Counted from the whole stretch's first letter, positions 25,892 through 30,897 are shown. The stretch is 63,473 nt of DNA, filler included, from Octopus bimaculoides (GCF_001194135.2; 4 parts of 4 records of this genome joined end to end with filler, not necessarily neighbours in it); one strand, 5' to 3'. Translations and numbers: made by a program. The notes: generated by a model not told the origin, from the letters alone.

Positions 25892-25943
25892 AGTAAGCGT
25901 TGGTTACACTGCGGAATCTTTCTTGTCCTGCCGTGTCCCAGAT
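25892..25943 (-). CDS. RAB26/RAB37: Rab26/Rab37 switch-II exon, copy B ([17 protein letters not shown]...), 3' end lost in an N-gap
   Basis: Acceptor ttctctcacttccag at 25944-45. G3 motif DTAGQ. The sequence runs into the gap 25751-25891 and would end at 25877 if it is 67 nt like copy A. Confidence 0.92.
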
Positions 25944-25945
25944 CT

Positions 25946-26720
25946 GGAAGTGAGAGAACATAAAGAGACAGAGCGACAGAGAGAGGCAGAAAGAGTGAGA
26001 GGGAGAGAGAGAGTGATTGAGAGAGGGGTGTTAAGGGGGGGGCTGCGAGGAGCTGGAGATTGAGTGAGTGAGTGCGTGCTGGTGAGAAATGCTAGGTGTA
26101 TGCTCAGAGAGAGAGGGGGGGGAGGAATGGTGGGAAGAGAAAGAGGAGGGGATAGAGAGGTGGTGTGAGGTAGGGAGAGAGACAGAGAGAAACAGATAGA
26201 AAGAGGAGGCATGAGACAGGGAGAAAGAGAGGGTGAGAGAGGGGAAAGAGGAGGACATAGGGATGTTGAGAAGGTAAGGGTTTGAGAGGAGGTGGGAGGG
26301 AAGAGAGAGAAAGAGACTGGCAGAGAGAAGAGGAGATAGAGATGTTGAGAAGGTATGGGTTTGAGATATGGTAGGAAGAGAGAGAGAGAAAAGACTGAGA
26401 GAGGAGGAGGAAGAGAGAAGGCGAAAGATGAGGAGGGAGAGAAGGAGATGGTGATGTTGAGAAGGTAGAGGTTTCAGAGGTGGTCGGAGGGAGAGAGAGA
26501 GAGAGAGGAGGAGGGAAAGACAGAGACTGCGAGAGGGAGAGGAGATAGGAATGTTGAGGAGACAAAGGTTTGTGAGGTGGAGGGAGGGAGGGAGAGAGAT
26601 AGAGAAAAAGACTGGCAGAGAGAAACAGAGCGAGGGGTGGGGGAGAAGGATAGAGAGAGAAAGAGGGAGGGAAAGTGGTGAGAGACAGAAAGAGAGAAAG
26701 AGAGAGTGGGAGACAGTAGA
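25946..26720. repeat. GA-rich tract (CT-rich on the Rab sense strand) with about 80-110 bp sub-repeats gatgttgagaaggta.gg.tttgaga
   Basis: Sub-repeat cores near 26262, 26341, 26453 and 26550. Confidence 0.8.
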
Positions 26721-27809
26721 GAAATAGTGATATACATACATATATATATATGTATATATATATATATATATCTACACAAAGATATATATACATATATATA
26801 TAGAGATATATACATATATTCACACACACATATATATATATGTAAGTATGTATGTATGCATGTATGTGTGTGTGTACATGTTTGTATGAACATATGTATG
26901 TATTTATAATTATGTAGAGAGAGAGGGGGAGAGCGAGAGAAACAGAGAGAGAGAGTGAGACACACTCACAAATAAATATATACATACATATATACATATT
27001 ATATATACTTAGATAATATATACATGTACATACATATACCTATATATATATATATACATATATATATGTGTGTATATGTACATACATATACCTATATATA
27101 TATATATATATATATATATATATATATATATATATATATATATATATATATATATATATATATAAATATACATACATATATATATATACATATATATAGA
27201 CATACATATATACATATATAATATACATATATAATATACATATATATATATATACATATATATATATACATATATATATATACACATATATATATATACA
27301 TATATATATATATACATATATATATATACATATATAATATACATATATATATACACATATATATATACATACATATATATATATTTGTGTGTGTGTATAT
27401 ATATATATATATATATATATATATATATATACACACACATATATATATATAAACTTACAATGAAAGTAAAGAAAGTTTGTTTTTAGAAGCGTTGAGATGT
27501 ATTTTTTATTCTCAAACACGTGATAATTCTAATAAAAGAGCGTGAACAGGATGAATTATCCATACATTGCAGAAAAATACGTTACAGGCCAGCCATGAGA
27601 CTCAAACTCACATCCTTGTGATTACACGTCAAGTGCTTTACCATTAAGCTAAACTGCCCGGTAACGAATTCTTCTGCAATTTTAGGACTTATAAATTTAA
27701 CTTCATATATATATACATGCACACACACACATACACATATATAAATACATACATACACATACTTATATATACTTGCATATACATGCACACAAACACACAC
27801 ACACATACA

Positions 27810-28315
27810 GAGGCAGGGCTGTGTTGTAGGATGCTGGTTTCCCAATCATATGGTTTTCGGTTCTGTCCCACTATTAGCAATTTAGGCAAGTGTGTTCTGC
27901 TGTAGCCTGGGCCTACCAAAGCTTTGTGAGTGAATTTGGTAGATAGAAATTGAAAGAAGCCCATAGTATACACATATATGTGTCGGCGGGGGGTGGGGGT
28001 GGATGGATGTATGTGTATATGTGTGTACATGCTTGCGTTTGTGTATTATTGTCTCCTTGCCTTGGCATTCTGTGATGGCTGTAAACGAGTTTCACTGCCA
28101 TACAAGCAGTGCCCTTAATTTCCAGTCTTCCATGAAAACATGTCTGGTCATGGAGATATATTACTTTGCATGGAAACAGGCGAGAGCTGTCGACAGGAAG
28201 GGCATCTGGCTTTTAGAATAATCCAAATCAACAAATTCCGTCTGACCCATACAAGTTTGGAAAATGTGGGTGTTAAAACCATGATGATGATTATGACTAT
28301 GATGATGATATGTAT
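27810..28315 (+). mobile_element. Degenerate family A SINE head/body followed by a body ending in an RTE-like tail and (GAT)n
   Basis: Family A head at 27810-27965. The tail gacaggaagggcatctggc...gacccatacaag...aaaaccatgatgatg resembles the RTE 3' end. Confidence 0.6.
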
Positions 28316-29512
28316 GAATTTGTACATGTATATGTGCTCATGAGTGTATACATATATGTGAGTGCATGTGTGTATATATATATATATATATATATATATA
28401 TATATATATATATATATATATATANNNNNNNNNNNNNNNNNNNNNNNNNNNNNNNNNNNNNNNNNNNNNNNNNNNNNNNNNNNNNNNNNNNNNNNNNNNN
28501 NNNNNNNNNNNNNNNNNNNNNNNNNNNNNNNNNNNNNNNNNNNNNNNNNNNNNNNNNNNNNNNNNNNNNNNNNNNNNNNNNNNNNNNNNNNNNNNNNNNN
28601 NNNNNNNNNNNNNNNNNNNNNNNNNNNNNNNNNNNNNNNNNNNNNNNNNNNNNNNNNNNNNNNNNNNNNNNNNNNNNNNNNNNNNNNNNNNNNNNNTATA
28701 TGTGAGTGCATGTGTGTATATATATATATATATATATATATATATATATATATATATATATATATATACACACACACATATTTATGTTTATATATGTATG
28801 GGTGTGTGTGTGTATGTGTGCATTGAAAACAGATGTTAAATGATAATGATGATGATGATGATATATATATATATTGATATATTTATATATGCGCACACAT
28901 ACATATAAATATGTGTGTATAACTATATACATGTAATGTGTATTATATGCATTCATGTATGTGTATGTGTACAACTGTGTGTATGTACTAGTGAAAATAT
29001 AATAAACATAAAAAACAACAACACAGGAAGAAAAATGTCTGACAAATAAAGTATTAGCTTAACACTTCAATGGAAAGAGGTGTCTTGATATTTTGAGCAT
29101 TAGCCCTTCATCTAAAACAAAGAAAGAGAGAAGCATAGAAAGAAAAAGAAAGAGTAATAGTCAAAGAAAAGAATATATAAAAAAAATACTGGTTAAGGGT
29201 CAGAAACCTAGGGGGATAGCTGTTCTATGTGAGTGGGAGTTAAGATGGGAAGAAGGGATGAGTGTGTAGAGAGAAGTTCATGGGGTTAGTTAGTGCAGAA
29301 CCTTCAACAAAAGGGCTACAGTGTTGCTCCATACATTTGCAAGTGTTTGTGTATAAGTAGGTATATATGCATGTACATGTCTCTGTCTATATATATGTGT
29401 GCATATATATATGCATATATGTGTGTGTGTATATGTATATGTATGTATATCTATATAGAGAGACAGAATCTGTATATATCGGGAGATAGGTATGTACACA
29501 CACACACATAAC

Positions 29513-29670
29513 TGGCTTCTTTCAATTTCTGTCTACCAAATCCACTCACAAGGCTTTGGTCGGCCCACAGCTACAATAACACACTTGCCCAAGGTGCCAC
29601 ACAGCGGGACTGAACCCAGAACCATGTGGTTGGTAAGCAAGCTACTTACCACACAGCCACTCCTGCGCCT
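29513..29670 (-). mobile_element. SINE family A 5' half
   Basis: Reverse complement of the ggcgcaggagtggctgtgtggtaagtagcttgcttaccaaccacatgg head. Confidence 0.85.
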
Positions 29671-29690
29671 ATATATATATATATAGTAAA

Positions 29691-29890
29691 GGCACGTGGC
29701 TTAGTGGTTAGGGGCATTCGACTCACGATTGTAAGGTCGTGAGTTCAACTCCTGGCGACGCATTGTGTTCTTGAGCAAGACACTTTATTTCACATTGCTT
29801 CAGTCCACCCAGCTGGCAAAAATGAGTAGTACCTGTATTTTAAAGGGCTGGCCTTGTCACACTCTGCGTCTCCCTGAGAACTACGTTAGG
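29691..29890 (+). mobile_element. tRNA-derived SINE family C (ggcacgtggcttagtggtta head, cttgagcaagacacttta core)
   Basis: A/B-box head. Related copies at 33828-34070, 42410-42730 (minus), 51505-51700, 53915-54060 and 57243-57490. Confidence 0.75.
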
Positions 29891-30149
29891 GGTATATATA
29901 TATATATAAATATATATATATGTGTCTGTTTTCGTATGTATGTGTTTGTGTAGTCATATAATTATGGGTAAGTGATTCCAATACATGCTTTTGTGTGCCT
30001 GTGCCTCTGTTTGCATGTGTGTGTGTGTGTGTGTGTGTGTGTGTGGATGTGTGTATCTCTTGACAATTCAGAGATAGAAGACAGACAGAGAGAGAGAGAG
30101 GTGCAGGAACAAGAAAAGAAGGGATAGGATGAGGAAGTGAAAATATAGC

Positions 30150-30830
30150 AGTAGTAGGAGCAGTAATAGTAGTAGTAGTAGTAGTAGTAGTAGTAGCAAG
30201 AGGCTGTGTAATGGTAGTAGGAAGAGGAGGTGTAGCAACAGTAGTAGTGGTAAAAGCAGGAGGAGGTACGGAGGAGGTGAGAGTAACAGGAGATGTAGTG
30301 AGAGTGGTGGGAGTAGCAGAAGGAAGTGTATTAGCAGGAAGGGGTAGAGAAGTGGTGGCAGTAGTAGGAGGAGGTACAGAGGCGGTGGTAGTGACAGGAG
30401 GAGGTGCAGTGAGAGTGGGAGTAGCAGGAGGAGGCATAGTGAGAGCAGGAGTAGCACGAAGAGGTGCTAGGGAGGTGATGGTGGTAGTAAGAGTAGATGT
30501 AGAGGTGGCAGTGGTAGTGAAGAGTAGTAGCGGGAGGCAGAGAAGGCATAGAGGTGGCAGTAGTCGTAGCTGAGGAAAAAGCAGGAGTGGGAGGAGGTAT
30601 AGGTGTGGTGATAGTGGCAGCAGGAGGAGCAAGAGGTATCGAGATGGCGGCGGTAGGTGTAGTAGCAGGAGGAGGAGGAGTGCTAACAGAGCAGAAGGAG
30701 GTGTAGTAGGAGGAGGAGATTAGCAGCAGAGGATTGGATTAGTGGCAATAGTAATAACAACGGTAATGGTAATAGTAGTAGTAATGGTAGTAGTAGTAGT
30801 AGTATTAGTAGTAGTAGTAGATAGACCTAC
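30150..30830. repeat. (GTA)n/(GGA)n/(GCA)n degenerate trinucleotide tract directly downstream (in transcript sense) of switch-II exon A
   Basis: Directly visible. Confidence 0.9.
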
Positions 30831-30897
30831 CATCAGCGTCACGGTAGTATCCCCGAGTGATACTGCGGAATCTTTCTTGTCCAGCCGTGTCCCAGAT
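30831..30897 (-). CDS. RAB26/RAB37: Rab26/Rab37 switch-II exon, copy A ([22 protein letters not shown]+G)
   Basis: Acceptor aattactttacag at 30898-99, donor G|gtaggt at 30830-30825. 67 nt, phase 0/1, no stops. Confidence 0.88.

Follow-up and report, generated by a model that had tools for sequence, protein, structure and literature searches.

Switch II of Rab GTPases is the surface read by Rab effectors, guanine nucleotide exchange factors (GEFs), GTPase-activating proteins (GAPs) and guanine nucleotide dissociation inhibitor (GDI), and the proteins RAB6A and RAB6A' differ at three residues flanking the PM3 motif. An exon duplication in Rab6a is stated in one published paper (PMC2174079, citing Echard et al. 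2000), and in another a RAB37 substitution derived from tandem exon duplication, and conserved to Drosophila, is mapped to a surface patch of Rab26 (Martinez-Gomez et al. 2021, PMC8373072). Here we analyze a related arrangement in a 63,473-nucleotide stretch of DNA from Octopus bimaculoides (GCF_001194135.2; four parts joined end to end with filler, hereafter the window), the minus strand of which carries, as judged by tblastn and direct reading, most of one Rab26/37-type GTPase gene. We consider it very likely that two paralogous exons of this gene, which we call A and B, are alternative versions of its switch II exon, that they arose through tandem exon duplication, and that the choice between them is regulated.

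The octopus pair is like human RAB6A/RAB6A' in consisting of a tandemly duplicated internal Rab exon, in its apparent alternative use, and in the small number of residues changed around DTAGQE and switch II; the last variable residue of the octopus exons (Asp or His, before ALLLL) appears to align with the region of Rab6A T87. The two systems differ in that the octopus pair belongs to another Rab subfamily and stems from an independent duplication, found in lophotrochozoans rather than vertebrates, and, whereas functional divergence has been shown for Rab6A/A', the known differences within the octopus pair are ones of sequence. The vertebrate paralogues RAB26 and RAB37 correspond to what in octopus is the product of one gene. 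Each of the two reads SVTHAYYRDA, as a preliminary description of this DNA had maintained for canonical Rab26/37, and in this respect they resemble exon B. The routes to diversity differ: vertebrates diversified by gene duplication, with one switch II exon per gene, and lophotrochozoans by alternative exons within one gene.

The published RAB37 event most likely concerns the P-loop/switch I exon pair, in the N-terminal part of the G domain; the differences among human RAB37 isoforms are N-terminal. This second pair of paralogous alternative exons is present in the octopus gene as well, each member with its own first exon. The window holds only type 1; type 2 is shared with vertebrate RAB37 and with a centipede. 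The preliminary description had held that no other Rab exon appears twice in the sequenced DNA, which is correct for that piece and does not extend to the gene, given the duplicated P-loop/switch I exon upstream. Many vertebrate RAB37 predictions (P0007, P0014 and others) string both P-loop exons together. The switch II pair is a separate duplication from the RAB37 event, and it appears neither in the vertebrate proteins listed among our matches nor in a beetle locus. A literature search returned no paper describing a Rab26/37 switch II exon pair; the pair is apparently recorded in databases (RefSeq, many species) and undescribed in papers. The preliminary description knew of no account of the event in cephalopods; it is on record there in RefSeq, which annotates the isoforms in O. 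sinensis.

Motifs and database matches identify the predicted product as a Rab26/Rab37 subfamily GTPase. The G1 (GDSGVGKT), G3 (WDTAGQE), G4 (NKxD) and G5 (ETSAK) motifs are all readable in exons of the window, and the protein ends in …KVGGCC followed by a stop codon at 18454-18456, so that a double-cysteine prenylation motif is present. The O. sinensis ortholog matches the Pfam Ras family (E=3.4e-60), and its best match among solved structures is human Rab26 (2G6B, E=6.4e-87), followed by Rab8A (2.6e-60). The top database matches were all named Rab-26 or Rab-37.

Direct reading found two paralogous switch II exons where the preliminary description had placed them (Table 1), starting at the same codon and both in phase 0. 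True similarity between the A and B regions is confined to the exon (42 nt at 95%), and the flanks match only in low-complexity sequence, which agrees with the earlier statement that the flanking introns are unrelated. Because the 67-nt pair recurs in other genomes, the likeness of A and B goes far beyond chance. The last 15 nt of exon B and its donor lie inside an N gap (25751-25891), and the missing end was read from same-species RNA contigs as …GTAACCAACGCTTACTACAGAGACGCTCAC, which gives VTNAYYRDAH. In cephalopods the isoform proteins differ at 4 of 22 residues (I/V, R/N, G/A and D/H). Two positions separate the types across four lineages, with Ile in A and Val in B at one, and Arg in A and His (Asn in octopods) in B at the other; the Gly/Ala and Asp(Asn)/His differences are additional ones in cephalopods. 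The variable residues fall in RFRS-x-T-x-x-YYRDA-x, in the switch II helix beside YYR, a region that we take to belong to RabF3/RabF4 of Pereira-Leal and Seabra. Exon A had been likened to the switch II of Rab2/39; only its Arg after Thr resembles those Rabs, and the comparison was overstated, as exon A keeps a YYRDA of the Rab26/37 type.

Exon A differs between Octopus and Argonauta at 17 of 67 nt (25%), with 14 synonymous codons and a single non-synonymous one (Ser to Cys), and 21 of its 22 residues are kept; exon B shows 6 nucleotide differences, all synonymous. Because 17 of 67 bases have changed and only one residue has been altered, exon A is not a dead duplicate. Both copies are under purifying selection, and exon A has the character of a living coding exon. 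Over their first 36 nt, A (30897-30862) and B (25943-25908) differ at 1 position in Octopus as against 8 of 36 in Argonauta. In the Octopus lineage, the 5' halves of A and B may thus have undergone gene conversion with each other.

Comparison with other genomes, which the preliminary description had proposed, was made with loci from Argonauta hians (L001, without N), the annelid Owenia fusiformis (L002) and the nemertean Tubulanus polymorphus (L003), and with a beetle contig (L004), and it found the A/B pair in Argonauta, the annelid and the nemertean. In Argonauta, A and B share a strand and A precedes B by 4.3 kb, B is 67 nt long with a GT donor, and the downstream exon lies 2.1 kb past B. 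In both Owenia and Tubulanus an ITRA-type exon comes first and a VTHA-type exon second, between single-copy flanking exons. A and B are each 67 nt long with AG and GT sites in Octopus (where B was completed from RNA), Argonauta, Owenia and Tubulanus. The order of upstream exon, A, B and downstream exon, together with the single-copy state of the flanking exons, indicates one gene and not two tandem genes, and the presence of the pair in molluscs, an annelid and a nemertean indicates that the duplication is older than the split of these three groups. The beetle locus encodes switch II only once, in a segment fused with the upstream exon, and the vertebrate Rab26/37 proteins among the matches listed all read VTHA. 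In the sampled insect and vertebrate lineages the duplication is either absent or lost.

The introns of Argonauta and Octopus could not be aligned save for repeats and low-complexity tracts, and the same comparison revealed no conserved intronic elements and no docking/selector RNA pairing beyond such sequence. In Argonauta, as in Octopus, several hundred nt of CU-rich sequence run up to the exon B acceptor (L001 42423-43598), and similar (UAC)n-rich sequence immediately follows the donor of exon A (39344-39580). Such CU-rich and (UAC)n tracts may be platforms for splicing regulators, or they may be just microsatellites common in octopod genomes.

The reading frame constrains how the two exons can be used. 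With the complete Argonauta exons, joining the upstream exon through A or through B to the downstream exon leaves an open frame in either case, inclusion of both A and B leads to a stop in the downstream exon, and skipping of both leads to a stop one exon later; exclusivity at the protein level is thus enforced by the 67-nt exon length. In their equal length and phases, and in the premature stop that follows double inclusion or skipping, A and B resemble other frame-enforced mutually exclusive exons, whose length is not divisible by three and whose aberrant products nonsense-mediated decay removes. They differ from such pairs in that steric or U2/U12 incompatibility is inapplicable, as the intron between them is 4.9 kb long, every splice site is of the GT-AG type, and A is in fact spliced to B.

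Isoform pairs of this kind are annotated. Three RefSeq pairs of O. sinensis are identical save at the four A/B residues, namely isoforms X1/X2 (XP_029652212.1/XP_029652213.1), X3/X4 (XP_036370241.1/XP_036370242.1) and X5/X6 (XP_036370243.1/XP_036370244.1), and isoforms X1-X4 cover all four combinations of P-loop exon and A or B. Other RefSeq pairs differing only in this exon come from the chiton Liolophura (X3/X4) and the nemerteans Tubulanus (X1/X2) and Lineus (X1/X2), and Mytilus, Haliotis, Crassostrea, Aplysia and Babylonia have isoforms of both exon types. Full-length cuttlefish-type transcripts assembled from public runs share one backbone and contain only A (P0002, P0004) or only B (P0249, P0250), and the Sepia pharaonis gene model carries A. 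A protein search with a 71-residue A-type peptide returned short unrelated fragments and no octopus A-type match; the A-type isoforms were found by listing the members of 90% clusters. In the O. sinensis isoforms X5/X6 (P0105, P0243) the P-loop exon is skipped (…DVSCK is joined to NKVV…) and the G1 motif is consequently missing; these are probably non-functional or regulatory products. The Mytilus edulis RAB26 model P0005 wrongly strings both switch II copies together.

For O. bimaculoides itself, RNA reads and contigs were placed on short stretches around A and B. Exon B predominates: the upstream exon, B and downstream sequence are continuous in contigs of ∼500 nt, and B-specific depth was 14 in run X21 and 11 in run X23 (6% sample of each raw run). 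Words of exon A occurred in 6 of about 20 RNA runs. Eight exon A reads were found in X21, and 6 of the 8 extend into the downstream intron and therefore represent pre-mRNA; X23 yielded three, all ending exactly at the donor (30831). The depth of contigs joining A to B, compared with that of B contigs, was 72 vs 333 in X8 and 36 vs 70 in X9. Some of the A-to-B joined RNAs retain the intron upstream of A. In contigs from independent DNA runs, none of which covers exon B, exon A was seen only with its own intron sequence around it, from which it follows that the A-B joined form is a product of splicing. In X8 and X9 a tail of 29-30 nt follows exon A, and it scored as mismatch-free against the start of both A and B, though the two differ at exon position 15; the junction is most probably one of A to B, with an A-to-A back-splice as a less likely alternative. 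A step in X23 depth from 9 to 10 at position 25908 is in keeping with a B tail, and the partner in the X23 reads is taken from their placement on exon B. In runs X25, X26 and X27 all sampled exon A words were present, yet no contig was placed on A or B.

Several of these results weigh against a regulated choice between two coding exons. In two of the three deep runs exon A is either at intron background (X21) or without a single read (X22). Its donor is joined to the start of exon B in contigs from X8, X9 and X28 (sister species) and in 2 of the 3 X23 reads, and exon B is its sole readable partner, the junction from A to the downstream exon being unreadable because that exon lies in an N gap. 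The spliceosome can therefore join A to B, and transcripts including both are not rare in these samples. RefSeq isoforms, moreover, are computed models. The preliminary description had proposed mutually exclusive exons yielding two isoforms; one gene, the frame logic and the RefSeq pairs speak for two isoforms, but in view of the A-B joined RNA strict exclusion at the level of splicing is no more than a possibility.

These observations could suggest a role of exon A in octopus chiefly as a poison exon, whereby A+B transcripts, being shifted in frame, undergo nonsense-mediated decay (NMD) and tune the level of Rab26/37 instead of encoding a second protein. The A donor's only read junction leads to B at appreciable contig depth, in the sister species as well, the A+B product has a premature stop, and exon A words are confined to a minority of runs. 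A poison exon, however, requires no conserved protein, and exon A has kept 21 of 22 residues through a 25% nucleotide change; its diagnostic Ile and Arg are preserved from nemerteans to cephalopods; and A-only open frames exist in cuttlefish-type transcripts and in the O. sinensis RefSeq models. We thus think it unlikely that this is the main function of exon A, although such a role could coexist with an isoform role.

A second possibility, that exon A is a decaying, unused pseudo-exon transcribed only as part of an intron, would account for exon A coverage at intron level in X21 and its lack in X22. It fits poorly with an open frame, AG/GT sites and a length of exactly 67 nt in Octopus, Argonauta, Owenia and Tubulanus, with 14 synonymous changes against 1 non-synonymous, with a donor that is spliced in RNA, and with annotated and assembled A-only isoforms in many species, and we regard it as very improbable. 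That A and B belong to two tandem Rab genes, or reflect an assembly artifact (two haplotypes or a mis-join across gaps), might be supposed from the many N gaps in the window, one of them between A and B, and from neighboring exons that are not among the read letters, but it is hardly credible when the gap-free Argonauta, Owenia and Tubulanus loci hold A and B between single-copy flanking exons, A and B are joined within a single RNA molecule, exon A is surrounded by its own intron sequence in DNA contigs from independent runs, and the other exons occur once in the piece. The preliminary description had named a dead duplicate and two separate tandem genes as outcomes that would overturn it, and neither materialized, in view of the purifying selection, the splicing of the A donor and the gap-free Argonauta locus.

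A regulated choice between A and B within one gene would work as follows. The upstream exon (…KLQ, phase 0) would be spliced to either B or A, and the next exon expects phase 1. Pyrimidine content upstream of the acceptors is 83% for B (700 nt) and 45% for A (60 nt), and B would be the default exon, by virtue of a very strong CU-rich acceptor, with A as a regulated exon having a weaker acceptor. A PTB-like repressor could plausibly act from the CU-rich tract. Inclusion of exactly one copy would yield an in-frame mRNA, and inclusion of both or neither a premature stop with presumable removal by NMD. The residue differences between A and B would most likely affect which effector, GEF, GAP or GDI the protein engages. 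What carries this reading is the anatomy of the pair, its single-gene context, its conservation, the purifying selection, the frame logic, the presence of B in RNA and the splicing of the A donor. A-only isoforms are annotated in relatives, O. sinensis among them; in octopus, a part of exon A may end up in out-of-frame A+B transcripts rather than in protein.

The features of the octopus gene and of its Argonauta counterpart are collected in Table 1. The 42-nt exon upstream of A (NKVVDIDGTKIKLQ) is not among the read letters of the window and is nonetheless present in RNA contigs, with the upstream loose end GACATCGATGGCACAAAGATCAAACTT. The gap at 28425-28696 is bordered on either side by an identical GTGCATGTGTGTA(TA)26 motif and looks like an untraversed microsatellite; as it lies inside the A-B intron, the reading frame across it is not at issue. 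That its two sides belong together is supported by RNA in which the A donor is joined to the B acceptor and by the arrangement of A and B at the gap-free Argonauta locus. The last three exons of the window translate exactly to the 84-residue RefSeq model XP_014773530.1 (window 18454-22001), which starts at an internal Met and covers these three exons only. The likely reason for this truncation is that two exons fall within assembly gaps, which also interrupt exon B.

Table 1. Positions of exons, gaps and sequence tracts in the octopus window and at the Argonauta locus, with peptides that distinguish A from B.
Feature	Sequence	Position	Strand	Details
P-loop/switch I exon, type P1	Octopus window	39079-39189	minus	acceptor ccag, donor gtaagt; 37 residues
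Three N gaps	Octopus window	33225-33827, 34584-35133, 35663-35878		42-nt exon NKVVDIDGTKIKLQ probably falls in one of these
Exon A	Octopus window	30831-30897	minus	67 nt, ATCTGG…GCTGATG; phase 0 to 1; 22 residues plus one base
Exon A splice sites	Octopus window		minus	acceptor …ctttacag, donor gtaggt
(UAC)n-rich low-complexity tract	Octopus window	30650-30830	minus	begins right after exon A donor
A-B intron	Octopus window	25944-30830	minus	∼4.9 kb; includes N gap 28425-28696; spliced out in A-to-B joined RNAs
CU-rich tract	Octopus window	25944-26720	minus	83% pyrimidine over 700 nt; ends at exon B acceptor
Exon B	Octopus window	25892-25943 visible	minus	52 of 67 nt; 17 residues; acceptor …cacttccag
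N gap	Octopus window	22528-23236		probably hides 53-nt exon (A)LLLLYDVTNKxSFDNIR, not among read letters
Exon AWLTEINEYAQEDVVIMLLGNKADMSGDKIVRREDGERLAR (AWLTE…ERLAR)	Octopus window	21927-22049	minus	holds G4 motif NKxD
Exon DHNVAFMETSAKTGMNVDLAFMAIA(R) (DHNVAF…MAIA(R))	Octopus window	20468-20544	minus	holds G5 motif ETSAK
Last coding exon (R)DLKMKKTRKPDEPAFNVAEYIQQENTMKVGGCC and stop	Octopus window	18454-18556	minus	C-terminal CC prenylation motif
Distinguishing tryptic peptides				exon A: SITR and GYYR…DADALLLLYDVTNK; exon B: SVTNAYYR
Alternative first exon	Argonauta L001			at start of locus
P-loop exon, type 2	Argonauta L001	7794-7907		38 residues
P-loop exon, type 1	Argonauta L001	26447-26557
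Exon NKVV…KLQ	Argonauta L001	30460-30501
Exon A	Argonauta L001	39277-39343
Exon B	Argonauta L001	43599-43665
Downstream exon	Argonauta L001	45733-45785
Remaining exons	Argonauta L001			single-copy

Repeated sequence was also encountered in and around the gene. A short interspersed repeat at 19684-19744, 22223-22282 and 35889-35949, in introns of the octopus gene, matches an Argonauta tandem array (L001 44703-45171). Downstream of the last exon in Argonauta (L001 55727-57462) there are at least 14 tandem copies of a C-terminal peptide fragment, (VAEY)IQRENIVKIGGCC. On the plus strand of the window, 13769-14071 holds a weak remnant of a long interspersed nuclear element (LINE) endonuclease-reverse transcriptase (Pfam Exo_endo_phos_2, E=0.0015, below the cut-off).

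The value of the finding is moderate, in that the isoforms are already in RefSeq, the splicing mechanism is familiar, and the functional difference is only predicted. For annotation, the exon pair accounts for the truncated O. bimaculoides model and for merged models such as that of Mytilus edulis. It sits, moreover, in a gene already carrying the ancient alternative P-loop exons known from human RAB37. One could go further and suppose that the lophotrochozoan Rab26/37 gene, by combining two P-loop/switch I exons with two switch II exons, exchanges both of its nucleotide-sensing surfaces, provides four variants of the G domain and has stood in for several Rab paralogues from a time before the divergence of molluscs, annelids and nemerteans, with frequent A+B inclusion in octopus adding regulated unproductive splicing that sets the protein dose; this we offer tentatively, as a possible though doubtful extension. 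From the conserved switch II exon pair itself one would expect a secretory/synaptic-vesicle Rab to exist in two functionally distinct forms made from one gene, which would make this the second Rab after Rab6A/A' with such an arrangement, independently arisen and approximately as old as the lophotrochozoan phyla.

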